A stretch of DNA of 64,000 nucleotides, taken from contig CATNEN010000038.1 in NCBI GenBank assembly GCA_950097015.1, forward strand, positions 29,698,001-29,762,000, given 5' to 3'. Numbering within the stretch: position 1 is the first letter of the stretch; the number at the start of each line of letters is the position of its first letter. The DNA comes from Macrostomum hystrix. Taxonomy: Eukaryota > Animalia > Platyhelminthes. Made by a program: the position numbers and the translations under genes. Below are positions 367 through 46,110 of this stretch, piece by piece. The notes under the pieces were generated by a model. That model had not been told where the DNA came from. It did not search any database and was given only the letters and a program-made list of their open reading frames with translations.

Positions 367-3300
367 CTCGTATGAATCACTTGGCCACATCGAGTGCGAC
401 AGTGATGGTATGAAGCTGTATTCACTGAAATAAATGTCATGCATTTCAAATGTCTGAGTAACATTGTGTTTGTAACGAGAACACATTGTAGAATGCTTGA
501 TTACAATATTTAAAAGGCTGATTCAAAGGCAAATTTACTCACTCGCAATCTTGCTTGCAGGTTGTTGTGCAATCAGTAAAAGCATCCTTCTCAGCACTTT
601 GAGCACACATGGCTAAAAATGAACACGTCGTCAGTGTGCTAATTATGCTCCAATTTCACTACATCTGAAAAACTGAAAACCAAAAACAAGCCTCACCGTT
701 GGTGCTGATGGTCGAGCTTGTAGAGTTGTATTCGTACATGCAGATCGCATAGCTGCTGTTGTACAGAGGGTCAACAGTCGGATCGGATATGGGAAGATTA
801 GGAGAACTGCAGCGGCAGCGCTTCTCCACTTTTCTCTGCATGCAGGTCTTCATGCAGGCCTTTTAAAATCAATTTGAGGAAATATCTTTTATTTTAAGCC
901 TAAATTGACCGCACGAATACCAAGCCCGTTTTCCTGAAGTTTGTGTGCCTATGTAAAACCTGCAGCCAACATCTCCAATGGGAAATCAAGTCCTGGTACT
1001 TCTACTGTTGACAAATATACGAGGGGTGTCCAAAAAGTAGTGATACTTTTGCTCGTACAGCCTTACTGCATGCTTGAAAATCAGCAAGTTTGGTGTTGTT
1101 GGAAAGCGAAAAATATCAGCTTTAATTTGACTGCAAACATTTAACAAAAACACAACCTATAACAAAGTTATGAATAGAAACACACAACAAGGTCAGCCAT
1201 AGAGTTACAATGAATTTATGCATGGTGTAACAGGTCAAGAAGTTTCGACAGTTAGTATGACTCATCATCATCAGGGAGGGAAGCTTTCTCGACATAATTA
1301 CCCCCCGATTGCACGCACTTCTCCCAGCGACGAAACAAGTGATCAATCGCATCTGCGTAGATCTGTCGCGGAATCACGTGCAAAAGTACTCTGCGGACTT
1401 CCTGTTCCAGGTGATCACGGCTGACATGGACACGGCCCCTCAGGTGGCGCTTCAATTGAGGGAAAAGGGCAAAATCCGCAGGCGCGAGATCTGGCGAATA
1501 TGGCGGATGAGGCAGAAGGTCAACTTTAGCTTTTTGATGGCCTCCATTGTTTGGTGGGCAGTGTGCGGCCGGGCGTTGTCATGATGCAGGATGACTGGCT
1601 TGACTCCCGAGCGCCGCTTATTTTGGATGTCTGCCTTCAGGCTTGCAAGGAGAGACGAATAACGGTCTGCGTTGATCATCGTATTCGGCTCCAGGAAGTC
1701 AATGGTGATTGGGCCATTACAGTCAAAGAAAACTGACAGCATGATTTTCTTACAGTGAGTTTCACGGCGAGCCTTGAGTGGTGGGTCGGAACCCTTAAGT
1801 GTCCACACTTTAGACTCTTGCTTTGTCGGCGGGTCAAAATGTGGAACCCACGTCTCGTCGCCAGTAACAATCAACTGGCGGAACTGATTCCAGCCACCGC
1901 GTTGACTTACCAGATTCAGGTTCCCTTGGCATGTCTGCTGGCGCTGCAGTCGCATATCAGCAGTGAGGAGCTTTGGGACCCAGCGGGCGCTCAGCTTAAC
2001 GAAGTTCATATTGGTCAGGCAGAGATGAACCGTTGATCGTGGCGTGTCGAGTCTGTCAGCAATCTCACGAATTGTCATTCTGCAGTCTTCTTCCAGCAGA
2101 TCAAGAATCCGGTCAGCCAAAGCCTTTGAGCTTGGTGCAGATGGCCTTCCTGGCCTTGGCAAGTCAGCCAAATTTGTTCTTCCTGACTCAAATTGCTCGA
2201 CCCATCTGTACACCGTCATGCGACTTACTGCTTCGGCTCCGTGAATGCTGCACAGATGATGGTAAATCTCCTGTCCACTTTTCCCAATACTCCATAGTGT
2301 GTGAATTGCGTGTCGCTGTCCTTCCTTTGAGCGCACGTCCATAACTGTCAGTTGAACAGAATCTGGTCTTTAAAAAGCAAGCACTTGTGAAAGAAAAATG
2401 AGCTGGCAGTGCAGAAGCAGGCAGGCAGGCAGAAGCAAGCAGGCAGTGCGAAGAAGACTTAGCCACAATTTACCACAGACAAAAAAGCAACCCTCGTACG
2501 CTCGTAAAATGCTACCCCAGTATTTATTGGTTTACATTTATTGATTTGTTAAGCTCTAAAGCTTCATGAATCTTTGAGGCAGATAAAAACTCAACAAAGT
2601 CAACCATACAGTATTTTTGTAAGTCTATGAGCAACCCTTGCTCAAATAGACAGTGATAACTTTTTTTAAAAACAACATATGAGGATGATTTTTTAGTCAA
2701 ATTAAGGCTGATATTTTTCGCTTTCCAACAACACCAAACTTGCTGATTTTCAAGCATGCAGTAAGGCTATACGAGCAAAAGTATCACTACTTTTTGGACA
2801 CCCCTCGTACATAGAAGGAAAATTTTATTTCAAAGTCTCAATAACTGGCGATATTTAGTAATGGGCCCAGGGGGTTGTAGCCTTGAGGTTAGAGCGTCAG
2901 ACAGACTATTTGGAGGTCGGATGCATAATTCGCGACTCCACTGGACCTGCATTGCTTCGGTCCACCAAGCTGTTAAATTGGTACCCAGCATTAGCTTGGG
3001 TAATTGCGGGTGGGTGTAGCTTCCCCCCAGTCCATGGACTGAACAGCCGTACGCAGCCTTCAGATGCGCCACGCAATAGCTGCGGCTGTGCTGTCGGCTG
3101 CACATTTGGCCCAATTGGGACAGGTTTAATCAATAAATTAAATAATCTAGACCTGCGGTTTGGTACATTGCACCAATTAAACTCACCAACTTTGAGTAGT
3201 TTGCATTCGGCATTGAAAAATTGGATTTAACGGCGTACATGTTGTTCTCCTTATTGGCGGTGACGTAGTCAATTTGACAATCATCGGCGTAAGGGTAGGA

Positions 3301-32356: not shown

Positions 32357-33122
32357 AATATCATAAGATGCCTGTCTTTCTTTGTTTCTACCTGTCTGTT
32401 CTTTTTACCCGTCTTTAGAAGCCTTACGTAGTCCTTTGTTTCCAACCGTGTCTGATTTAGCCACATCACTAAAATCGTATCTTCATGTATCTGTGATTAT
32501 CTGCATTCTAAATTCTATTTAATAATACTTTATCTCGAGTTTTTGCTTGAAACCGGTGTCACAAATGAAATTCACATAAATTAGTTCTTTCGCTTTATAT
32601 ATTTAATTTATATTCAGTCACGTAAATAGTTTTTTTAGTATATTATAATTTTGTATGCACCGCTAATCTATAGTATCCATTCATTCATATCCATATTGCA
32701 TCCATTGACTCAATCATAGGCTTATTAGTTAACGTAATATCCAAGTCCAAGTGACATTGTATTGTGCAATGCTTGCATATTCAAAAATCTCTGTGATAAA
32801 TGCTTTGTGTACATTATTTCTTATTCTTCTTATTTATACATGTTTGTTATTAACTTAACTTGTAAACAATTGTTCTGGTTTTTACTTCAGGAACTCTCAT
32901 TCTACTTATAGTGAACTGTAATTAGATTTTTATTAGCTGTTTTCTGTTTCGAAACTGTCTAGACTGTCTATACTTGCGGCCTAGCTAGTGTTGTTTTGTA
33001 AAAGGATTAGCACATGTGTTGTATATTGTATTTAATTTTCACGTCAAGCATTACTTGTTACACATTCATTTCGTTCTTTGTTATATACCTTTAAACTATT
33101 AACGTTACTAGATGACTTTGAC

Positions 33123-35390
33123 TACAGGAATCCAAACAACACCATCATCCTCCTGAACTTCAGGAACCGCTCCGCCACCCTCATCCTCCTGAACTTTAGA
33201 AACCGCTCCGCCACCCTCATCCTCCTGAACTTTAGAAACCGCTCCGCCACACTCGTCCTCCTGAACTTCAGTAACCGCTCCGCCACACTCGTCCTCCTGA
33301 ACTTTAGAAACCGCTCCGCCACACTCGTCCTCCTGAACTTTAGAAACCGGTCCGCCACACTCGTCCTCCTGAACTTCAGTAACCGCTCCGCCACACTCGT
33401 CCTCCTGAACTTTAGAAACCGCTCCGCCACCCTCATCCTACTGAACTTTAGAAACCGGTCCGCCACCATCATCCTCCTGAACTTCAGTAACCGCTCCGCC
33501 ACACTCGTCCTCCTGAACTTCAGGAACCGCTCCGCCACACTCGTCCTCCTGAACTTTAAGAACCGCTCCGCCACCCTCATCCTCCTGAACTTTAGAAACC
33601 GGTCCGCCACCATCATCCTCCTGAACTTCAGTAACCGCTCCGCCACACTCGTCCTCCTGAACTTTAGAAACCGCTCCGCCACACTCGTCCTCCTGAACTT
33701 TAGAAACCGCTCCGCCACACTCGTCCTCCTGAACTTTAGGAACCGCTCCGCCACACTCGTCCTCCTGAACTTTAAGAACCGCTCCGCCACCCTCATCCTC
33801 CTGAACTTCTGTAACCGCTCCGCCACACTCGTCCTCCTGAACTTCAGGAACCGCTCCGCCACACTCGTCCTCCTGAACTTCAGTAACCGCTCCGCCACAC
33901 TCGTCCTCCTGAACTTCAGTAACCGCTCCGCCACACTCGTCCTCCTGAACTTTAGAAACCGCTCCGCCACACTCGTCCTCCTGAACTTTAAGAACCGCTC
34001 CGCCACCCTCATCCTCCTGAACTTTAGAAACCGGTCCGCCACCATCATCCTCCTGAACTTCAGTAACCGCTCCGCCACACTCGTCCTCCTGAACTTTAAG
34101 AACCGCTCCGCCACCCTCATCCTCCTGAACTTCTGTAACCGCTCCGCCACACTCGTCCTCCTGAACTTCAGTAACCGCTCCGCCACACTCGTCCTCCTGA
34201 ACTTTAGGAACCGCTCCGCCACACTCGTCCTCCTGAACTTTAGAAACCGCTCCGCCACACTCGTCCTCCTGAACTTTAGGAACCGCTCCGCCACACTCAT
34301 CCTCCTGAACTTTAGAAACCGGTCCGCCACACTCATCCTCCTGAACTTCAGTAACCGCTCCGCCACACTCATCCTCCTGAACTTCAGTAACCGCTCCGCC
34401 ACACTCGTCCTCCTGAATTTTAGAAACCGCTCCGCCACACTCGTCCTCCTGAACTTTAAGAACCGCTCCGCCACCCTCATCCTCCTGAACTTTAGAAACC
34501 GGTCCGCCACCATCATCCTCCTGAACTTCAGTAACCGCTCCGCCACACTCGTCCTCCTGAACTTTAGAAACCGCTCCGCCACACTCGTCCTCCTGAACTT
34601 TAGAAACCGCTCCGCCACACTCGTCCTCCTGAACTTTAGAAACCGCTCCGCCACACTCGTCCTCCTGAACTTTAGGAACCGCTCCGCCACACTCGTCCTC
34701 CTGAACTTTAAGAACCGCTCCGCCACCCTCATCCTCCTGAACTTTAGAAACCGGTCCGCCACACTCATCCTCCTGAACTTCAGTAACCGCTCCGCCACAC
34801 TCGTCCTCCTGAATTTTAGAAACCGCTCCGCCACACTCGTCCTCCTGAACTTTAAGAACCGCTCCGCCACCCTCATCCTCCTGAACTTTAGAAACCGGTC
34901 CGCCACCATCATCCTCCTGAACTTCAGTAACCGCTCCGCCACACTCGTCCTCCTGAACTTTAGAAACCGCTCCGCCACACTCGTCCTCCTGAACTTTAGG
35001 AACCGCTCCGCCACACTCGTCCTCCTGAACTTTAAGAACCGCTCCGCCACCATCATCCTCCTGAACTTCTGTAACCGCTCCGCCACACTCATCCTCCTGA
35101 ACTTCAGTAACCGCTCCGCCACACTCGTCCTCCTGAACTTTAAGAACCGCTCCGCCACCCTCATCCTGAACCTCCGAAATCGCTCTGCCACCCTCATCCT
35201 CCTGAACCTCCGAAACCGCTCTGCCACCCTCATCCTCCTGAACCTCCGAAACCGCTCTGCCACCCTCATCCTCCTGAACTTTAGAAACCACTCCGCCACC
35301 CTCATCCTCCTGAACTTTAGAAACCGCTCCGCCACCCTAATCCTCCTGAACTTTAGAAACCGCTCCGCCACCCTCGTCCTCCTGAGCTTC
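33123..35390. repeat. 36-bp minisatellite (~63 copies)
   Basis: AACCGCTCCGCCACACTCGTCCTCCTGAACTTTAGA units. Confidence 0.96.
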
Positions 35391-35506
35391 ATGGACACAT
35401 TCTTAGGCCTTAAACTTTAAAGGAATGTAAACATTTCCGCAGTATTCGTCCTAATGCTAAGCCAAGTTGTCATTATTTTCAGATTCTGAACATTTAATAG
35501 TGAAAC

Positions 35507-36211
35507 ATGACCAGTATGCAGATGCAAGCCACAGCGGCAGTCCAACGCCTACAGGGTACATGGCGCTCCGCAATGGGTCGCATGACCAACCAAATGTTCC
35601 CAGTCCGTAAGCAGGACTTGGAGAAGATCAGATTGCAAACTGGTCGCACAGGTTTGGAATACGCCACTTTCCTGCCGCTGCAGATTGTCTACTATTTCAA
35701 CGCTTTCTTTGCACCATTCTGGCTTGTCGGCTTCCTATTGTCAATCATCGACAAGTACAGCAGGCTTAGCTACATCCTGCAGCCAATTCTTATTGCACTA
35801 TTCTGCTTGTATTGCATTCTGGAATTCATCAGATTGTACATTGGCTACTTTGGCAATCTATCGGAGAACATTGCTGATCTGGCTGGTAGTTGGTTAATCA
35901 CAGCTATTATCCAATTGCCTGCTATCTGCTTCTTTCTGTTTAACTATTATCTGCTGGTCAATCCTTTTGAAATCGTCATACACGCCATTGAATTCACATT
36001 TGTCCTATTGGAGGTCATCATGGGTCTCTACACTATTAAAGTATTTCAAACTGTGCAAGCTTTGAAATTTCATCACAAAATGGAATACTTCAATCCGGAT
36101 GGCACCGATCAGGCTATTGATGAGCGACAGGACGGCTACGTTTATTATAATAACGCATTCGATGGCACAGAAATGCGCAGGCGAACAGCCGGTCAGACTA
36201 CCATTGCTTGA
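35507..36211 (+). CDS. TMEM17: TMEM17-like ciliary transition-zone membrane protein
   Basis: Single ORF with LPLQIVYYFNAFF and LEFIRLYIGYFGNLSENIADLAGSWL, matching the TMEM17/TMEM216 family signature; four hydrophobic segments. Confidence 0.85.
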   Translation: MTSMQMQATAAVQRLQGTWRSAMGRMTNQMFPVRKQDLEKIRLQTGRTGLEYATFLPLQIVYYFNAFFAPFWLVGFLLSIIDKYSRLSYILQPILIALFCLYCILEFIRLYIGYFGNLSENIADLAGSWLITAIIQLPAICFFLFNYYLLVNPFEIVIHAIEFTFVLLEVIMGLYTIKVFQTVQALKFHHKMEYFNPDGTDQAIDERQDGYVYYNNAFDGTEMRRRTAGQTTIA

Positions 36212-36252
36212 CTTGAGGACTAGACTTGCTGATGGAATGGATGAACATTTAT

Positions 36253-36860
36253 GGGCCAGCCATTCCGCTAATCCATGTGACCTTCAGTGGGCTATTCTGC
36301 TAATCCATGTGACCTTCAGTGGGCCATTCCGCTAATCCATGTGACCTTCAGTGGGCCATTCTGCTAATCCATGTGACCTTCAGTGGGCCCTTACGCTAAT
36401 CCATGTGACCTTCAGTCGGCCCTTACGCTAATCCATGTGACCTTCAGTGGGCCATTCCGCTAATCCATGTGACCTTCAGTGGGCCATTCCGCTAATCCAT
36501 GTGACCTTCAGTGGGCCATTCTGCTAATCCATGTGACTTTCAGTGGGCCCTTACGCTAATCCATGTGACCTTCAGTCGGCCCTTACGCTAATCCATGTGA
36601 CCTTCATTGGACCACTCCGCTAATCCATGTGACCTTCATTGGGCCATTCCGCTAATCCATGTGACCTTCAGTAGGCCCTTACGCTAATCCATGTGACCTT
36701 CAGTGGGCCATTCCGCTAATCCATGTGACCTTCAGTGGGCTATTCTGCTAATCCATGTGACCTTCAGTGGGCCATTCTGCTAATCCATGTGACCTTCTGT
36801 CGGCCCTTACGCTAATCCATGTGACCTTCAGTGGGCCATTCCGCTAATCCATGTGACCTA
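36253..36860. repeat. 32-bp minisatellite in the TMEM17 3' region
   Basis: GCTAATCCATGTGACCTTCAGTGGGCCATTCC units. Confidence 0.93.
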
Positions 36861-37632
36861 CTGTAGGTTATTTATCAAGAAACTAAGTGATGATTTATAA
36901 TCCGAACATATTTCATTTATTTTTAATTTACTTTAATTGGATTTTTTGAACAGCTGTGCTTTAATATATGTATTGTATAGTAAATTCCATTGTACGAGTA
37001 ATAATGTGATTGTATTCTCGCTGTATTAACTTTTTGTAGCTTCTATGCTTTATGTTTATGAAAAAAAATCGAAATAATTTCTTTTTAGTGCCTAGTTACA
37101 AAGCCTTTTGATAGCAAATTTATAGACTACATAATTCTAACTGATTATTTAAATCTTTGCGAGTTCGCTTTCTTTAATTCATTCCGTCCGCTGGCTGTGA
37201 CATCGGTTCTTTAATACGTTTTTTTATCAAAAATGTTTCTTTATAAATTTTGAATGCATGTTAAATACACGTTTAACAATTGTATTTTTAGTTATACCAC
37301 TGCACTATAGTTTCTTAATTTCTTACTTGTTATGTTGGAATATACTTTAGAGTTTGTTTGTTAAGTAGAAAACAGTTGCCTTCAATTCGACTGAATTTGG
37401 TGCCCAAACTGGAATTAAACCACGAAGTAAGTTTACTATACTATTTCTGTAACATTTTATTATTTTTCTGTTTTGACTTAACACATGAGTCTTAGTTAGA
37501 ATTGTTGCTAACATTATAAGCTTGATTTAGAATTATATAAACGCGGCGATAACCTTATCTGTAATCAAAACAGAAACTTTTATTAGTATCGGAGTTAAAT
37601 AGGGTTTAAAAGGCCTTGAAATTTATTTAATT

Positions 37633-37700
37633 GTGATGAAATTTTATTTAACAAAGAAATCACTTATGATTGAAACTCAAAGCTGATTTAATGAGACTGA
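37633..37700 (+). ncRNA. SNORD57: box C/D snoRNA family A copy 1 (SNORD57/snR51-like, 18S Am99/100 guide)
   Basis: C box GTGATGA; guide AGCTGATTTAATGAG antisense to 18S CUCAUUAAAUCAG; D box CTGA. Confidence 0.88.
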
Positions 37701-37890
37701 TATTTAGACACCTGTCATTTCAAATGCAGATCATAATCCATACGTTCAGTGTATAATTAAAGTGCTGTTAACTCTTTTCTTTTCAGACTTAAACTGTGAA
37801 AATATTCATTACAAACACACGATGGTAAGCTTGTTAAGCGTGTTTATTACTATAAGTAGCGCATAAGTATATATATTGTTTAAAAAGCGA

Positions 37891-37973
37891 ATGATGACAA
37901 TTGAACAGTTGACTCAGTGACACCCAATTAAGGGTTCATTGTAATTCACTTGATATTAACCCCAGCTCTCTGA
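37891..37973 (+). ncRNA. box C/D snoRNA family B copy 1
   Basis: ATGATGA ... TTGAACAG-TTGA ... TTAACCCCAGCTCT-CTGA; short terminal stem GCGA/TCGT. Confidence 0.88.
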
Positions 37974-38074
37974 TCGTTTAATCTGGACATTTTAATTTCT
38001 TTGCAATCGTATTTGTTTAAGCTTACTGTTTACTATAAGTAGCACGTTAGCGTATTTTTGTTATAAACACTATC

Positions 38075-38157
38075 GTGATGACAATTGAACAGTTGACTCA
38101 GTGACACCCAATTAAGGGTTCATTGTAATTCACTTGATATTAACCCCAGCTCTCTGA
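38075..38157 (+). ncRNA. box C/D snoRNA family B copy 2
   Basis: GTGATGA...CTGA; interior appears identical to copy 1. Confidence 0.87.
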
Positions 38158-38440
38158 TGTGGTAGTCTGTTAGCATTCGTCTGTATTTAAGCCGATATAA
38201 TATGTATATATATTTATTTAATTCTTTGTTTTTCTATTTTCAGATTGCATTATGAACAGTTCGACAACTGCTTTTCTCCTAGTGTAAGTAAAATTACTAG
38301 TATTTTGCGAATCATTTCCTCTTTTCTATTTCGAAATAAGAGATACGATATGGAGAAATGAGACACTGAATAGATTGACTTAAAGCTGACTCAATGCTTT
38401 AACATCTCTGAAAGACTATTCAATACTTAACCCTGAGTAG

Positions 38441-38533
38441 ATGATGACATTTGAACAGTAGAAGTGAGGTCGTCAATCACTGTCACTGATGTACCTTGCA
38501 AACTTAACCTTGATATTAACCCCAGCTCTCTGA
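38441..38533 (+). ncRNA. box C/D snoRNA family B copy 3
   Basis: ATGATGA...TTAACCCCAGCTCTCTGA. Confidence 0.85.
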
Positions 38534-38788
38534 CATACAATACCGAAATTTAGGTAGGATGATGATAATTTTGTTTAGATTTCTACTAAATTCCTGACCT
38601 GTTTAGTTTATTTATATCATTGCAGAAATCTCCGTGGTGTCACAATATTCAAGTAAGTTGAAATCTACTTAGTAATTGTTATTACTTACCTACCCGATCC
38701 TATTTCACTCGTTGTAAAAGCCAATGTTGATATCCAAGTAGAAGCAGCTGCTAGACAATGTTTTAAAGGCCTTAAGATTTAGTTAATT

Positions 38789-38856
38789 GTGATGAAATTG
38801 TATTTAACAAAGAAATCACTTATGATTTAAATTTAAAGCTGATTTAATGAGACTGA
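38789..38856 (+). ncRNA. SNORD57: box C/D snoRNA family A copy 2
   Basis: GTGATGA...AGCTGATTTAATGAGACTGA. Confidence 0.88.
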
Positions 38857-39049
38857 TATTCAAATGTATGTTATTTAAACTGCAGATTATGTAAATACTA
38901 GGCTAATATAATTTACATTATCTTCTTAATTTTCTTGTTTTTTAGGCAGGAAGCAGTTCCGACCTCTATTAAAAAACATAACACGGTAAGTGCTAAGCAA
39001 GTTTTTTTAGTTTTAAGTAGCATATAAGTATATACTATTAAAAAAGCGA

Positions 39050-39133
39050 ATGATGACAATTGAACAGTTGACTCAGTGACACCCTAATTAAGGGTTCATT
39101 GTAATTCACTTGATATTAACCCCAGCTCTCTGA
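39050..39133 (+). ncRNA. box C/D snoRNA family B copy 4
   Basis: ATGATGA...TTAACCCCAGCTCTCTGA; terminal stem GCGA/TCGT. Confidence 0.87.
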
Positions 39134-39381
39134 TCGTTTAATATGGAATATATATAGATAATAGTTTTTATACGTCGTGTTGTGTTCATAATAGTAAAAT
39201 ATTATTATGTCTTCAGTTGATAAAGACTCTACTCATTAAAACGAATATTTTAAGTCATTTTATTCTTATTTTAATTTCAATTCTTTTAGAACGAACCAAC
39301 GGATCGGTAAACTATTGGGTAAGATTTAAGAACTATGATTATAATGCTCATTTTGTTTTTGCTTTTTGTCGATGCTTTATT

Positions 39382-39453
39382 GTGATGACTATTCTAGTTT
39401 ATCATGATTGTTTTCCACGGTGATTATTACAAAAGCTGATTTAATGAGACTGA
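39382..39453 (+). ncRNA. SNORD57: box C/D snoRNA family A copy 3
   Basis: GTGATGA...AGCTGATTTAATGAGACTGA. Confidence 0.86.
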
Positions 39454-39647
39454 TAATTTTTCACCGATTGCTGTTAAGCTTTAATCTATTTTAAAACTAT
39501 GAAAATTGAACTGTTGAATATTATTTTGTCATTTTTAGATTCTAACAAATTCAATTTAACAAGTACGACAACTACTTACTTCATAACGTGAGTAGTACGA
39601 ATAGCATTTGTTAAAAGGGTGTTAAAAACCTTACAACTGAGGCTATT

Positions 39648-39716
39648 ATGATGAAATTGTAAATAACAAAGAAATCAATTTATGATTGCAATTCAAAGCT
39701 GATTTAATGAGACTGA
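39648..39716 (+). ncRNA. SNORD57: box C/D snoRNA family A copy 4
   Basis: ATGATGA...AGCTGATTTAATGAGACTGA. Confidence 0.87.
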
Positions 39717-39898
39717 TATTTAAACACCTATGGAATCTATGGAGCTTAGATTCCATAGTTAGTATATAATATCATTAAAGTGCTCTTCATTATATCTTTT
39801 TCAGACTGAAAGCAGTTCCAAGAACACCAAGGTAAGTTTTAAGATTAGTTTTTTACTTTAAATAGGTCTAAGTATGATTTTTTTAAATAAAAAAACGA

Positions 39899-39982
39899 AT
39901 GATGACAATTGAACAGTTGAATCAGTGACATCCTAATTAAAGGTTCATTGTAATTCCCTTGATATTAACCCCAGCTCTCTGA
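39899..39982 (+). ncRNA. box C/D snoRNA family B copy 5
   Basis: ATGATGA...TTAACCCCAGCTCTCTGA. Confidence 0.87.
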
Positions 39983-40437
39983 TGTTGAAATCTGTAATCA
40001 ATATTTTTACAAGCTTCATTATAAAAAATTATTTCATCATTTTATTATCTTCTGTTTGTTTTAGATTGCATCATAGAGAAAAGTCTCGAAGATTCGTCTA
40101 CTACTTGTCTCTCTCATTGTAAGTAGTAATAATGGCATATTGCGAATATTATGTTACGCAAAATATAAAAATATAGAAACAGACTAAAGAGATGTGACAC
40201 TAGAGATACGAGAAATAGGAGAGATGAGAATCTATATTGTTCGGAGGATGAGACCGGTGAGACAGGACAGGGCAGAGATAATACAATAAGGTTTTATGCT
40301 ACAGGGGAGAGTTATGGGACTAGAGAGATTGAACAAGAGAGACATTTATAAAATCATGCTAGAACAATGACCTTCGGACCCTACTTTGTAATTACCAGCG
40401 TTTGTCGACCCACAATTTAAACACTTACCTAATTTGG

Positions 40438-40525
40438 ATGATGAATTTCGAACAGTTGAAGTGAAGTCATCAAACACTGATGTACTTCTACGAACTAAAT
40501 TTTGATATTAACCCCAGCTCTCTGA
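40438..40525 (+). ncRNA. box C/D snoRNA family B copy 6
   Basis: ATGATGA...TTAACCCCAGCTCTCTGA; interior resembles copy 3. Confidence 0.85.
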
Positions 40526-40845
40526 TATTAGTGAAGGAATCTAGAAAAGTAATATTTTTACTAAAACCGTGTTCTGTAATCTGTCCTCTTCAATTTTCAG
40601 TGCTCAGTATATGGCCCTTGTAACACATCACATTGTTTTCATGTAAGTATTTTATATGCGTAACATGATTAGTCATTCTGATAAATGTTACTGAACGATT
40701 GTCCGCAATACAGTCAATGTTTTTTTAGTTTTCTAGAATTTTCTGATATAAAATAGTCAAGGTTTTACTACTTATTAAACGCAACTTGAGTAGTGTGTAT
40801 GAATTTTCGAAGTTGTTTTAGTGACAGCAGTAATATCTGTCCCTC

Positions 40846-40901
40846 GTGATGAAAATTGAACAGTTGACTTCAAAACATTGATAATAACCCCAGCTCTCTG
40901 A
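40846..40901 (+). ncRNA. box C/D snoRNA family B copy 7 (short, 56 nt)
   Basis: GTGATGA-AAATTGAACAG-TTGA...TAACCCCAGCTCT-CTGA. Confidence 0.8.
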
Positions 40902-41089
40902 AAATAACAACTAGTTAGCAGCTTAATTACGCATTATAATTTGTCAAGTTAACTTTCATAACAGCCAATTATTTTCGTTTTAGATTCATAAGAAATCCGA
41001 CGGAAAACACTGCTTTCGATTATGTAACAACAAGTAAGTTCATCAATTGTATATTTTTGTAAACAACTTTTAATATAGATTGTTTTATC

Positions 41090-41161
41090 CTGATGATACT
41101 TATCATATAATGATAGTTTTGAATTTATTTGAAAATACAATAGCTGATTTAATGAGACTGA
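41090..41161 (+). ncRNA. SNORD57: box C/D snoRNA family A copy 5
   Basis: CTGATGA...AGCTGATTTAATGAGACTGA. Confidence 0.82.
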
Positions 41162-41576
41162 ATTAACCCTAGAGTATTGCATCTACTGTTCAAACTTATG
41201 ATTTTCATGTCAGTCGCTAATAAAATGCTTTTATTTTGTTTTTATAGGTAATAACAACGAGACCGATATACCTTGGTGAGTAGCATGTCAAGTATTTGAC
41301 ATTTTTCTTCTTTTCATTAAAATTGTTTTATATATATGACTAGCTTTTTTTGCCCGTTGTTTTTGGGGCAGAAATTTAAAGCAAAGCAGTAAGCAATTCA
41401 CGTCTCTGTATTAACTTTATAGTGAAGGTCACCATTTATTTATTTACTGCATTAATGAAAAGTGAAGAGTTTGTTTAAGGGCGTTTTAAGTAAAAAATAA
41501 GTGAAAAGTTTGTCCAAACAGCCCCCTCTTGATTACTTCTTTAGAAACATGTCTCTTAGCCACTCCTCTATACAGT

Positions 41577-41838
41577 CAGTGGCAGATCCAGGAATTTTGT
41601 TTTGGGGCGGTCTGTCAGGGGAGCGCCATGAGAATCACAGAGGGCCGAAAAAGGGCGCCAGGAGCCAAGAAAAGGCGCCAGCGGCTGAAAAACGGGAGCC
41701 AGCGGCTGAAAAAGGGGCGCCAGCGGCCGAAAAGGGGCGCCAGTGCTGCGACTGGCGCCCCTGGTGGGGGCATCTTATTCCCATGATTAAAATTTAGGGG
41801 GGCGACTGCCCCCCCGCCCCCCCCTAAATCTGCCTCTG
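41577..41838. mobile_element. hAT-type MITE nested in the Helitron
   Basis: TIRs CAGTGGCAGAT / ATCTGCCTCTG; exact 8-bp TSD TATACAGT at 41569-41576 and 41839-41846. Confidence 0.85.
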
Positions 41839-41990
41839 TATACAGTATGCATGTACACGCGTAGACATAAAGAAAATAGCCATGACATAACAATAACAAT
41901 GTCAAAGAAACAAAATTAAACTGTTTCAGAGTTCAGAGTTAGACAGGTCAAGGTCAATTCGTGACTACTTTTCTATTAATTGCTTGCGAG

Positions 41991-42630
41991 TCATCTCAAG
42001 GCCTGGGGATACACCACATTCTTCGTTCTTCCCCTTGGTGCGAAAATGAATAGGCCAGCTGGAGTTCCAACACGGGAGCAGGCGACATAAAGCTGCCCAT
42101 GCGAGAAGCACGGAGTCTCCAGGTTGATGCCAGCCACCTTCAGCGACTGTCCCTGAGCCTTGTTAATAGTCATCGCAAAGCACACTCTCACAGGGAACTG
42201 CAGTCGCTTGAACTGAAATGGCAGGTCCGTGGGGATAATTGGAATCCGGGGAACGAACACAGACTCTCTTCTGCCAGATCCAGTCATTATCGTGGCCTCA
42301 ATCACGTGTGGGAAGAGCCGCCTGACTATCAGTCTGGTGCCGTTACACAGCCTTGGCGCATTCAGGTTGCGGAGGAGCATAATTGGTGCCCCAACTTTCA
42401 GCTGCAAGTTGTGCGATGGAGTTCCAGGAGGATCTAGAGAGTTCAGAAACTCAACAGGATACTCCACAGCGGTGTCATCAGTCAACGTTGTATCAATTGA
42501 CTTGTAGGTGAAAACTGCACCTGGCAACTCCTGAAGCAGTTGGTAGTTAATTTCGTTGGCGGCATCATTTCTAGGACACAGAATTGCCCTCTCTGACAGC
42601 CAGTCAACGTCAGCATATCGAGAGAAATAG
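41991..42630 (-). pseudogene. PIF1-like helicase C-terminal fragment of Helitron RepHel
   Basis: RAILCPRN, LKVGAPIMLLRNL..LCNGTRL, RLQFPVRVCFAMTINKAQGQSL, FSHGQLYVACSRV, TKNVVY. Confidence 0.92.
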
Positions 42631-43314
42631 GCTGGCTGGAGAGAAATATAAACCGGAGAGCCCTGCGCACTGGGACGCCACCGCACTCACCGCACTCAGT
42701 CTCAGTGCTGCTTGGGGGCCAGTAGACAGTCTAGGGGTTTGGGCTGTGTACATTCACGGCTTGAAATACAATGTACAGTCTGGGGCTTCGGCGCCCGGGG
42801 AAGGGAGGGGGTGGCTGTAATAAAATTTGGCCCGCAGAGTGGCGGAGGGGAGTTGGGGTGGCTGTCCTCGGAAAACAAAAAGTGACTCACTTTGAGATGA
42901 TGCAGCTTTGCTCTGGATTGAGTAGAGATGTTCAAAATTGACAGCATTGTTGGAAAACATGTAAAGTGTAAGTGGATCAAATTTGGAGAAAATCTGACAA
43001 AGTGGGGCGACGATATGTCGAATTGAGTGATTTTTTGACGATTTTTGAGCAGTTTTTTGCACTTTTGAGCAGGAAGGAAATGATTTTTCGGGAATTTGAG
43101 TAGCCTATTGCACTCAGCGTAGGTGGTTTAAGGTATGTGCAAAGTTTGGTGCGATTTGGTTCAGCGGTTTCGGCGTCTATAAAGACAAAAGGTTGCACAC
43201 ACACACACACACACAGACAGACAGAGTTTTCACTTTTATATATATAGATTGTCACTAGTGCAAAACCCCTTTTTATTTTTAACAAAAAACATATAACGAC
43301 TTAATAATTGTTTT

Positions 43315-43379
43315 CTGATGATATTTTAACTTTCAAGATCAATTCATGATTGATCTATAAGCTGATTTAATGAGACTGA
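43315..43379 (+). ncRNA. SNORD57: box C/D snoRNA family A copy 6
   Basis: CTGATGA...AGCTGATTTAATGAGACTGA. Confidence 0.82.
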
Positions 43380-43565
43380 TATGTTATTGTTGATTGTTTC
43401 ATTAGAAAAAGTAAAACTTAAAACTTTTTATGACACAATTTCAATAAAACCATATATTTTAGATATTTATTAATGGAATTCCAAATTCAAGCAAAGAAAA
43501 AAGTGCGCAAAAAGAAATGTAAGTTTTTCTTTTTTGTTACCTCCAACTTATTTTTTTAGGAAAAT

Positions 43566-43635
43566 ATGATGAAATTATTTATTGGTTTAATGATCTTATT
43601 TATGATTGATTGGAAAGCTGATTTAATGAGACTGA
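43566..43635 (+). ncRNA. SNORD57: box C/D snoRNA family A copy 7
   Basis: ATGATGA...AGCTGATTTAATGAGACTGA. Confidence 0.86.
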
Positions 43636-43828
43636 ACTTAAGTATTACCTATACTGATATAATATGATATACTATTATCAATAGTTTGACTATGATATTC
43701 TATAGGAAATATTCATATTTTTTCAGATATTCGAATAGTTCCAGCCACAATGCGCTCTCTTTGTAGAGTTCCAAGGTAAGCTGACACTTTTTTCTGACAT
43801 GTCATGCTTTAGACCGAAATAGCCACAC

Positions 43829-43881
43829 ATGATGACACTTGAACACTTGATATTTAAATGAAATTAACCCCAGCTCTCTGA
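43829..43881 (+). ncRNA. box C/D snoRNA family B copy 8 (short, 53 nt)
   Basis: ATGATGA-CACTTGAACAC-TTGA...TTAACCCCAGCTCT-CTGA. Confidence 0.8.
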
Positions 43882-44088
43882 AAATGAATAATAATTATGT
43901 TTCATTAATTTGTATTAATAAACAATTGTATAATATAGTTTTTTTCACCCCAAAAAATTTCAGATAAGTCGCGTCTTCAAGAGGTCTACATAGAAAACTT
44001 AATTAGTTGTAAAATCTGAAGGTTAAAATAGAATAGACATTATTGCATATATATATTAATCATAAGTGTTACAATTTATTAAATTTCT

Positions 44089-46110
44089 ATGTTTCAGCAA
44101 TCAGTAACTGGCGCATCGTTTGACGCGGCCGTTGCCAAATTCACTGAGAATCGTCTAATTGTTAAAGAATTTCCATCTAGCGCAGATGAAGGCGAAGATG
44201 CTCGACTTAAAGTTCGCGGTTTGCAGGCTAACATGGAAATTAGACCTGGCGATATGCTCATCAAAATACCCGTAGATATTATGTTAGTTCCGCCTTCGAT
44301 GCCGTCTAAAACTACGCCATTGTATCGCCTATCGTTAGCTCTGTACAATGAATTGATATCATTATCATCGATTGGTCATTTGGAACATGTTAGAGCTTGT
44401 CTATTCAAGTCTAACCATACAATGTCTGAGATAGTCGTAGAGGTTGCAGCTAGTGTTGAGGCTAGAATTCAGCTTCGTGATCAACTGTTTATTGGCGCTT
44501 GCGCTGATCAGCATGGCGAATCTCTTGGCTATGCGGCCAAGCTGCTGATTGGTCGGCTAGCCGAGCTGGCTTCTGATTGGCTAGCGTCTGTCCCTACGGA
44601 GAATGCGAATGCTGCCAATACTGTAGTGGAGCGAAAGCTGCTTTGGTTGGCTTGCTGCTATTGGACTAACACTAGGTTAGTGAGACTTATCATTACATAT
44701 AAATCAGTGACAGCAGTTAGTGGTTACAAAAAATCACTTTCATATTTTCATCGATGTCTAGGCATATCCATTGAATAGAGGCCACATCCTCGTATTAGTT
44801 CGCATCCTTGAATAAAACTTTTATCGCCAGCGTTTTTTATCGCCTTTTTTATCGCCATAGTTTCTATGGTCTTAGCATCAGCTCTTATACTTGTAGTTGT
44901 GTACAGTGTACACATATTATCGTCAGTGTACAGTGTGCACATCTTATCGTCAGTGTATAAGTGTACACAGCCTCTTACCGACAGAGTACATTGTACACAG
45001 TTTCTTAACGTCAGTGTACAGTGTACACATCTTATCGTCTGTCTATAAGTGTACACAGCTTCTTATCGTCAGAGTACATCGTACAAGGAGTTTCTTATCG
45101 TCAGAGTACATCGTACAAGGAGTTTCTTATCGTCAGAGTACATCGTACAAGGAGTTTCTTATCGTCAGAGTACATCGTACAAAGAGTTTCTTATCGTCAG
45201 AATACATCGTACAAAGAGTTTCTTATCGTCAGTGTACATCGTACAAAGAGTTTCTTATCGTCAGTGTACAGCGTGCATAACTTCTTATCATGAGTTCCCA
45301 GCGTGCCCAATCATCCTCAGCTGACTTATCCTGTCTAGCGCTTATCAAAACAAGACGGGTTGCGTTAGCAAAATTAAAAAAATACTTCTCCATTAAACTC
45401 ATTGCAGAGTGGTACATTGTCCCGGCTTAAACCAAATCGTCCTTGCGCCATATTTCGATCTGTTCAATCATTCACCAACTGTGTCGGTAGAGACCGCTTA
45501 TGACAGCGTCTCACGAAGCTTGGTGTTAATTACAAACACTGCCTACAAAGCTGGAGATCAGGTGTTCATTAACTATGGTAACCATAGCAACATGACGCTG
45601 CTAGTTGAGTACGACTTTGTACTGGGCCAAGCCCCGATTGCACATGATTGCGTGCCAATCGGATTGATCGATATGTCATCAATATCTACTAGACAGTTCA
45701 AATGCTATCTACAGCAGTTTACCAAAATGGGCATGTGCCCGCCAGCTGATGCACTTTTATGCGACGGACTAATGTTACTCAAGTACTTTCATTTGACAAT
45801 TGACGGGCCTAGTTACTATCTGTTGTTGTTGCTTTATCTCGCAGCTAAGACTGCTAGTGAATCGACCATAGGTCTCTCTGACATTGTTAGTTCTATGAGT
45901 GAAGATCAGTTGATTAATTCTTTAAGGAGCGATCTTATCGATTTGTATAATAGACTAAAAGCTCGTCTGATTCGCGACAGAAACATGTTAGCTCGTCTTG
46001 CTATTAAAATCAACTCGAATTCCACTCCGCTTGGTAGGTTGCTAGGCAACTGCATCACAGTGATAGATGTCTGGTGCAATATTGTCAATTGTCTGCTTGA
46101 TAATATGTGA
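44089..46110 (+). CDS. SETD4: SET-domain lysine methyltransferase, SETD4-like
   Basis: Exons 44089(or 44098)-44675 and 45408-46110. Motifs RGLQA..IRPGDMLIKIP, WTNTR, LAPYFDLFNH, GDQVFINYGNHSNMTLLVEYDF. Confidence 0.8.
44898..45285. repeat. ~32-bp minisatellite in the SETD4-like intron
   Basis: CTTATCGTCAGAGTACATCGTACAAGGAGTTT units. Confidence 0.85.

Follow-up and report, generated by a model that had tools for sequence, protein, structure and literature searches.

A putative non-coding host gene of Macrostomum hystrix with fifteen predicted box C/D snoRNAs from two families in its introns

Introduction

An AT-rich region of the Macrostomum hystrix genome contains two short motifs that recur many times over a few kilobases, and this raises the question of what kind of gene keeps them there. 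An earlier note, made from the letters of the region, had read them as the guide and D-box portions of box C/D snoRNAs located in the introns of a micro-exon host gene of the UHG/GAS5 type. Here we examine this reading in the window, i.e., the complete 64-kb stretch of DNA analysed, and in the 220-Mb assembly to which it belongs. Very likely, the locus is a non-protein-coding gene that undergoes splicing and bears, in 14 introns, 15 snoRNAs representing two predicted rRNA methylation guides. No description of snoRNAs of this flatworm was found in the literature searched.

Results

The 16-mer that defines family A occurs seven times in the window (0.07 expected by chance) and the 13-mer of family B exactly eight times (1.15 expected), all of them on the plus strand, between 37.6 and 43.9 kb, and where the earlier note had located them. 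Each copy is preceded by TGATGA and followed by CTGA, with 52–92 nt from the start of the C box to the end of the D box. The units follow one another in the claimed order, A B B B A B A A B B B A A A B, and the 15 of them are indeed distributed over 14 introns.

The putative first exon (37292–37426) ends at a GTAAGT donor at 37427; its 5' limit is tentative, position 37292 being no more than a candidate acceptor or start. Intron 1 contains snoRNA A1 (37633–37700), and exon 2 (37787–37824; 38 nt) leads to intron 2, which houses both B1 (37891–37973), 270 nt away from the 3' splice site, and B2 (38075–38157). Exon 3 (38244–38283; 40 nt), B3 in intron 3 (38441–38533), exon 4 (38626–38652; 27 nt), A2 in intron 4 (38789–38856), exon 5 (38946–38985; 40 nt) and B4 in intron 5 (39050–39133) come next. 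Exon 6 (39217–39318) measures 102 nt with the acceptor before 39217 and 29 nt (39290–39318) with the proximal acceptor. Intron 6 with A3 (39382–39453) is followed by exon 7 (39539–39587; 49 nt), intron 7 with A4 (39648–39716), exon 8 (39805–39831; 27 nt), intron 8 with B5 (39899–39982), exon 9 (40065–40118; 54 nt), intron 9 with B6 (40438–40525), exon 10 (40601–40642; 42 nt), intron 10 with the compact B7 of 56 nt (40846–40901), exon 11 (40984–41033; 50 nt), intron 11 with A5 (41091–41161), and exon 12 (41248–41275; 28 nt). Intron 12, which contains A6 (43316–43379) 83 nt upstream of its 3' splice site, reaches 2187 nt because of a young repeated element inserted on the minus strand (41330–43190, with true ends slightly outside these coordinates). 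The insert carries a minus-strand ORF fragment with a Pif1-helicase 2B domain. Exon 13 (43463–43518; 56 nt), A7 in intron 13 (43566–43635), exon 14 (43727–43775; 49 nt) and the compact B8 of 53 nt in intron 14 (43829–43881) complete the series up to the last host exon or junction region (43963–44096), which includes an ATTAAA hexamer at 44078, the ATG of a SET-domain ORF at 44089, and a strong acceptor ending at 44096.

In agreement with the earlier note, each of the 13 internal exons, counted at 27–56 nt, lies between an AG acceptor and a GTRAG donor; the acceptors are rich in pyrimidines. Splice-like motifs of this kind are strand-specific: GTRAGT is present 11 times there and 3 times on the minus strand (2.3 expected), and TTTYAG 16 and 5 times, respectively (5.8 expected). 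In 13 of the 14 introns the distance from the end of the D box to the 3' splice site is 75–92 nt; when the second acceptor of intron 5 (exon from 39217) is used, B4 is placed 83 nt upstream and all 14 introns fall within this range. By contrast, the distance between the 5' splice site and the snoRNA varies from 47 to 2040 nt. The position that box C/D snoRNAs prefer lies approximately 50 nt ahead of the branch point (PMC5519232), with which the constrained snoRNA-to-acceptor spacing is consistent. A single snoRNA is found in every intron except intron 2, whose B1/B2 pair arose from a recent 184-bp duplication and is still nearly identical.

Family A comprises seven copies of 64–72 nt whose D-box guide can form 15 bp with positions 96–110 of the genome's own 18S rRNA. 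The fifth-nucleotide rule applied to this guide points to 18S A99, which is the site of human SNORD57 (PMC10911272). By virtue of its predicted D-box guide, family A is thus of the SNORD57 type. The two RNAs share the antisense element beside box D as well as the target, and each has one functional guide only; the remainder of family A, however, is unrelated to SNORD57. Moreover, human SNORD57 is a single gene located in a NOP56 intron, while family A is present in seven copies in a non-coding host.

Family B (eight copies, 53–93 nt) can pair with 28S positions 3279–3290 via 8 contiguous bp and another 3 bp beyond a fixed C·U mismatch, and the guide selects C3282, i.e., the C of GAGCUGGG. Its core, CCCAGCUCU, aligns with the snR69 guide in the Rfam consensus (RF00475). 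We take C3282 to be equivalent to yeast C2948, presuming that the surrounding rRNA sequence is conserved. Family B is accordingly predicted to serve the same peptidyl-transferase-centre cytosine of 25S/28S rRNA as yeast snR69, for which guiding of C2948 is documented (PMC10899779). The likeness is confined to guide core and target cytosine. The guide of the snR69 consensus belongs to the 5' half of the RNA and precedes an internal D'-like box, whereas that of family B adjoins the terminal D box; in addition, the family B guide has a C where the 28S complement requires an A, and overall similarity to snR69 is absent. A matching G that would repair the mismatch was found in no rDNA copy, and no second snoRNA with a perfect guide for the 28S site is present in the 220-Mb assembly. 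Accessory pairing beside the main target does not stand out, ranking about 43rd among 538 windows. For the conserved D'-side region of family B, TTGAACAGTTGA, no convincing complement was detected in 18S, 5.8S or 28S rRNA, the ITS regions and the spacer, nor in U1, U2, U4, U5, U6 or SL RNA. Guide B also matches the rDNA spacer over 13 bp, in AT-rich sequence upstream of the U1 gene, and we regard this match as fortuitous.

SNORD57 (RF00274) is the best Rfam match for family A, with a top score of 27.8 bits for A3 against a gathering score of 47, yet every family stays below its gathering score; snR69 reaches 27 bits against 50 on family B, and with a misplaced alignment. At gathering thresholds, Rfam yields no match in the 64-kb window or in metagenome relatives. 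A snoscan-like control on both strands of the window recovered the seven A units and nothing else.

Within each family the copies agree at every position (100%) of the C box, the D box and the guide, while the internal regions outside these elements are 35–47% and the flanks 33–48% identical. Even old copies whose internal identity is as low as 2–24% retain every box and guide base. Between paralogous three-unit blocks the snoRNAs are 89–99% identical, as compared with 42–50% for the exons and 38–65% for the intron filler, and exon indels are not divisible by three. Terminal stems of 4–7 bp are possible in six copies; the other nine have 3 bp or less. Weak terminal stems are tolerated when snoRNA assembly is splicing-dependent (PMC5519232).

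Additional copies of guide A or B are found nowhere in the 220-Mb assembly. One guide match with a single mismatch, on contig C1 (L008), has no boxes. Judged from the assembled sequence, the locus is the genome's sole source of both guides, and the idea of a dedicated amplifier of two guides, put forward in the earlier note, fits this absence.

Discussion

The best explanation of the locus is, in our opinion, a tandem expansion that has produced 15 box C/D snoRNA genes of two families, all lying in introns of a spliced non-coding transcript, a reading that we consider probable. Against it count the Rfam scores below the gathering level, the short pairing of family B with 28S rRNA, the short terminal stems in about half the copies and the scarcity of stop triplets in the exons. 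The entire 6.6 kb would be transcribed by RNA polymerase II; after splicing and debranching, exonucleases would shorten each intron until only the snoRNP-protected core from C box to D box is left. Family A would then direct 2'-O-methylation of 18S A99 and family B methylation of 28S C3282 in the peptidyl-transferase centre, and one primary transcript could yield up to seven copies of A and eight of B. Motifs, boxes, rRNA complementarity, conservation pattern, splice-signal geometry and genome uniqueness were obtained directly; from them we infer that the locus is transcribed and spliced, that snoRNPs assemble and that the two rRNA sites are methylated.

Repeated clusters of few snoRNA kinds are typical for plants and trypanosomes, where endonucleases cut the units from a precursor. 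An unspliced polycistronic precursor processed in that manner, with merely incidental splice-like signals, would match the composition of the array. This is very unlikely given that fourteen strong donors, each paired with a strong acceptor, succeed one another in order and on a single strand, that the spacing between snoRNA and acceptor is constrained as opposed to the free spacing between donor and snoRNA, and that many copies do not possess the terminal stems favouring splicing-independent assembly (PMC5519232). Nor does the near-identity of B1 and B2, which testifies to the recent origin of some copies, lend much credit to a functionless, decaying repeat whose common motifs merely reflect recent duplication or gene conversion: boxes and guides are intact in the most diverged old copies, the guides fit functional rRNA sites, and guides for these conserved methylation sites exist nowhere else in the genome, so that we regard decay as extremely improbable. 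It is also highly improbable that the micro-exons encode a protein. What speaks for a protein-coding micro-exon gene is a stop-free chain of frames through exons 4–14 (452 nt, junction codons ignored), which is reached by 0.05% of within-exon shuffles and 1.7% of exon-order permutations, together with a count of 20 exon stop triplets where about 33 are expected from composition. However, once junction codons are read from the exon ends, stops appear at junctions 3/4 and 12/13 and leave about 114 open codons; there is no ATG in the open frame before exon 10, the longest ATG-initiated frame traced has about 36 codons, and the frame is lost with the 39217 acceptor. Furthermore, paralogous exons differ by 2, 11 and 13 nt in length in addition to their low identity, the segment that exons 5 and 8 have in common does not keep the same reading frame in both, and the antisense control for the chain gives 177 nt. 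On this exon-by-exon assessment, which is based on frame arithmetic only, the exons appear to be devoid of coding capacity and are less conserved than the snoRNAs, and the stop-poor frame is regarded as an oddity.

At its 3' end the host comes close to a coding gene on the same strand. No more than 126 nt separate its last acceptor (43962) from the ATG of the SET-domain ORF (44089), so that a separate promoter would have little room, and ATTAAA at 44078 is the sole poly(A)-like hexamer found in the junction region. The micro-exons might therefore be an outron, i.e., a long spliced leader, or else a non-coding first cistron, and transcription would proceed from them into the SET-domain gene. 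Spliced-leader trans-splicing at the acceptor that ends at 44096 would then set free the mRNA of this gene; the snoRNAs would remain unchanged. We regard this as a serious possibility, albeit one that falls short of an even chance. In line with it, the ATTAAA precedes the strong acceptor by 13 nt, the acceptor lies on a codon boundary of the SET-domain ORF, and the spliced-leader exon of this genome, located in the SL region of the rDNA spacer, ends in ATG, such that trans-splicing at this acceptor would preserve the SET-domain frame. On the other hand, ATTAAA is common by chance in AT-rich DNA, and an internal promoter might be present in the last introns. Another array on the same contig has its own terminal exon with AATAAA, and no coding gene follows within 1.5 kb, indicating that an arrangement of host running into gene is not general. 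That the array forms the spliced non-coding upstream part of a polycistronic unit, with spliced-leader trans-splicing freeing the mRNAs of the SET-domain and GTPase genes downstream, seems to us somewhat unlikely. If true, snoRNA supply in this flatworm would be tied to transcription of the operon, and what trans-splicing removes from the transcript would itself be the snoRNA precursor. As to the neighbouring genes, TMEM17 has an orthologue in Macrostomum lignano, while for the SET-domain ORF no match was obtained within the length limits of the search.

The array of intron-encoded snoRNAs conforms to a type of host gene that is already known, of which the locus is a repetitive example. Every test at the level of the sequence (boxes, guides, spacing, exon divergence) was consistent with the UHG/GAS5-type host envisaged in the earlier note. 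Like vertebrate UHG/SNHG1 and GAS5 and Drosophila dUhg, the flatworm gene would have short, poorly conserved exons without a long ORF and one box C/D snoRNA per intron, positioned at a fixed distance before the 3' splice site, with the snoRNAs as the conserved product. Those hosts, however, carry mostly many different guides, while here two kinds are present seven and eight times as a result of local duplication; furthermore, a protein-coding gene adjoins the flatworm host, and spliced-leader trans-splicing occurs in this organism. The mammalian SNORD115/SNORD116 and SNORD113/114 clusters likewise consist of units of a short exon plus a one-snoRNA intron, belong to few families and are embedded in a long non-coding transcript. 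By contrast, these mammalian arrays are imprinted, contain far more copies and encode orphan snoRNAs without rRNA targets, whereas the flatworm array is small and both of its families are predicted canonical rRNA guides.

With its junction to a gene that is probably trans-spliced, the locus lends itself to a simple test of whether a snoRNA host can act as an operon leader. Our analysis adds two well-supported predicted rRNA methylation guides for this flatworm, one for 18S A99 and one for a 28S cytosine in the peptidyl-transferase centre. Both would be supplied from a single, locally amplified locus only, and one which, being ORF-less, gene finders would miss.

Two families of conserved box C/D units

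The two recurrent motifs that an earlier note had described occur exactly in the claimed numbers: the 16-mer of family A is present seven times (0.07 expected by chance) and the 13-mer of family B eight times (1.15 expected), all of them on the + strand only. Likewise, the claimed boxes surround every copy, with CTGA directly 3' and TGATGA upstream, at a span of 52–92 nt as measured from the first nucleotide of TGATGA to the last nucleotide of CTGA. In an alignment of the seven family A copies, box C and the 20 nt comprising guide and box D are 100% identical, and the internal region (46 columns) has a mean identity of 47% with a minimum of 24%. The eight copies of family B are 100% identical in box C and in the 17 nt of guide and box D, 94% identical in a 12-nt element shortly after box C, and 89% identical in a TGATAT-like C' box, while their internal spacer varies in length from about 8 to 45 nt and has a mean identity of 35% (minimum 2%). 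Flanks of the snoRNA copies are 33–48% identical. Because boxes and guides are invariant even where the copies otherwise share almost nothing, the alignments point to selection acting on each snoRNA copy and not to recent duplication alone.

Family B also carries the element TTGAACAGTTGA 11 nt after box C (e.g. 37901–37912), which consists of a D'-side guide region and a TTGA D' box and persists even in those two copies that have diverged most. A search for its target in rRNA, the ITS regions, the spacer, U1, U2, U4, U5, U6 and SL RNA yielded nothing convincing, and the element may represent an orphan second guide.

Predicted rRNA targets

Targets were sought in one 11.6-kb rDNA repeat of the M. 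hystrix assembly (220 Mb, 42 contigs), with 18S, 5.8S and 28S annotated by Rfam. Over 15 consecutive bases, guide A is the complement of 18S positions 96–110, and its fifth nucleotide upstream of box D faces A99, which in human is assigned to SNORD57 (PMC10911272). Our snoscan-like control covered both strands of the 64-kb window and asked for TGATGA 40–120 nt upstream of CTGA and, adjoining CTGA, a perfect complement of at least 10 nt to rRNA of this genome; it recovered only the seven units of family A. SNORD57 was also their best Rfam match, but at a sub-threshold 27.8 bits versus a gathering score of 47. Family A corresponds to the functional definition of SNORD57 by its predicted target but does not reach the Rfam score threshold.

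Guide B pairs with 28S 3279–3290 (GAGCUGGGUUUA) and would select C3282, which we take to be the equivalent of yeast C2948 on the basis of conserved rRNA sequence and the aligned guide cores. The guide B core is also present in the Rfam consensus of snR69, with which family B shares target and guide core but not architecture. In yeast, 25S C2948 is methylated through snR69 and has the snR71 target A2946 next to it in the peptidyl-transferase centre (PMC10899779). Pairing between guide B and 28S is not perfect, as positions 2–9 and 11–13 are paired and position 10 is a C·U mismatch: the guide has a C where perfect pairing with 28S needs an A, and the uridine opposite is conserved and lies in the peptidyl-transferase centre. 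This mismatch is fixed in 8/8 copies (37957–43881). None of the rDNA copies of the genome has a G that would repair it, and a genome search for another snoRNA-like gene with a perfect 28S guide found none. We regard families A and B as predicted functional equivalents of SNORD57 and snR69, not as proven members.

A probable non-coding host with intronic snoRNAs

Between consecutive snoRNAs lie 13 predicted exons of 27–56 nt, each preceded by a pyrimidine-rich tract that ends in AG and followed by GTRAG (mostly GTAAGT), in agreement with the micro-exons previously proposed. The splice-like signals are strand-specific, with GTRAGT found 11 times on the + and 3 times on the − strand (2.3 expected) and TTTYAG 16 and 5 times, respectively (5.8 expected). 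The most telling feature of the predicted host is the position of the snoRNAs relative to the acceptors. In 13 of the 14 introns, 75–92 nt separate the end of box D from the 3' splice site; on the donor side, the interval between 5' splice site and box C varies between 47 and 2040 nt. Intron 5 is an outlier with 156 nt between box D and acceptor; use of an upstream acceptor (exon start at 39217) gives 83 nt and would extend exon 6 to 102 nt. According to PMC5519232 (citing Hirose and Steitz 2001), roughly 50 nt lie between intronic box C/D snoRNPs and the branch point downstream of them, a fixed spacing to the 3' splice site being a hallmark of splicing-dependent assembly. Both this spacing and the weak terminal stems (at most 3 bp in 9 of the 15 snoRNA copies) fit such a mode of assembly.

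One block of three units, namely A, a B of 83 nt and a B of about 90 nt, is present three times in the array, and among these paralogous blocks the snoRNAs are 89–99% identical, the intron filler 38–65%, and the exons (38, 40 and 27 nt) 42–50%. Divergence of exons at least as fast as that of intron filler is the signature of a non-coding host as predicted here. Intron 2 harbors two nearly identical B copies derived from a recent 184-bp duplication in which the copied donor site was destroyed. Intron 12 (2187 nt) was recently enlarged by a 1.86-kb repeated element (41330–43190) with at least 40 near-full-length copies, 95–100% identical, elsewhere on many contigs of the genome. This very young element, which includes part of a Pif1-type helicase ORF (2B domain) on the − strand, looks like a non-autonomous, Helitron-derived element.

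That the exons encode protein, i.e. that the locus is a micro-exon coding host, is in our view very improbable, even though they are poor in stops (20 stop triplets versus about 33 expected from composition) and each of them is open in at least one of the three frames. When exons were inspected one by one and frames chained arithmetically, junction codons being ignored, one chain stayed open for 452 nt. Of the shuffles within exons only 0.05%, and of the permutations of exon order only 1.7%, attained these 452 nt, and the antisense control gave 177 nt. However, once the codons that span the junctions are read, stops appear at junctions 3/4 and 12/13, and what is left is an open frame of about 114 codons with no ATG before exon 10; use of the acceptor at 39217 would break this frame. 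Moreover, the reading frame of a homologous segment common to exons 5 and 8 differs between the two exons, and the lengths of the indels between paralogous exons are not multiples of three. Exons 4–12 (38626–41275) are A/C-rich and T-poor relative to the introns, and the open frame is probably a compositional oddity of such exons plus chance; their composition is perhaps related to splicing enhancers. Boxes, rRNA complementarity, splice geometry and exon divergence together support, at the level of sequence, the non-coding host of the UHG/GAS5 type first put forward, and we consider an intronic C/D snoRNA array in such a host to be the likely interpretation.

Neighboring genes and the 3' end of the host

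TMEM17 (35507–36211; 89% identical to an M. lignano protein), a minisatellite (~36250–36860, after the TMEM17 stop codon) in which a 36-bp unit is repeated about 17 times, the host, and a SET-domain gene follow each other on the + strand. No AATAAA was found in the 1.2 kb between TMEM17 and the host. Long overlapping ORFs on both strands at 33078–35420 (780 and 758 aa), which have strongly negative GC skew and no Pfam match, probably reflect low-complexity or repeat sequence.

How the host ends relative to the SET-domain gene can be read in several ways. Its last acceptor (43962) is located 126 nt before the SET-domain ATG (44089), and this genomic ATG overlaps a strong acceptor that ends at 44096 on a codon boundary of the ORF. 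The only poly(A)-like hexamer between these two acceptors is an ATTAAA at 44078. Possibly, the host ends here and is followed by the SET-domain gene as a downstream cistron that undergoes trans-splicing. The spacer of each 11.6-kb rDNA repeat (contig C17, 1–14000, − strand) contains a U1 snRNA gene as well as a spliced-leader gene, the exon of which has ATG at its end, and trans-splicing at 44096 would thus keep the reading frame. Alternatively, the SET-domain gene may have the micro-exons as its long leader or outron, or a promoter may reside inside the last host introns. A host abutting a coding gene is not general, because a second array on the same contig (C38, 6331001–6348000, − strand), which has at least ten copies of a guide (ACTTGCCCTC, followed by CTGA) that matches 18S position 557 by complementarity, closes with a terminal exon bearing an AATAAA and is not adjoined by a coding gene. 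At a site upstream of U1 and some 1.4 kb beyond 28S, the rDNA spacer also holds a 13-bp complement to guide B (one G·U pair), which we attribute to chance.

Relation to known arrays and origin of the guides

In its predicted way of working the locus matches UHG, GAS5 and dUhg, the non-coding multi-snoRNA hosts of vertebrates and fly. The mammalian SNORD115/116 and SNORD113/114 arrays are alike in repeating very few families but differ in that both guides described here are canonical rRNA guides. Nothing on Macrostomum snoRNAs was found in the literature searched. The proposal that the array amplifies two guides fits the finding that neither occurs elsewhere in the assembly with up to one mismatch allowed. 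A single near-match on contig C1 was without boxes and was rejected as a snoRNA.

A strict search of metagenome contigs for the family B combination of C' box, guide and D box identified four contigs, each with one copy of a plausible 60–70-nt box C/D snoRNA of the same layout; none of the four matched an Rfam family. Three of them belong to one organism and have the canonical guide (A), which pairs perfectly with 28S. The fourth, L022 (3686–3708, − strand), has the C-for-A variant of the flatworm family and derives from an unrelated animal, as seen from exons of an SLC6 transporter and a polyhomeotic-like ORF. Because these contigs share the guide and L022 also the mismatch, the comparison indicates that the guide B type, even its mismatch, is older than Macrostomum; the amplification appears to be local.
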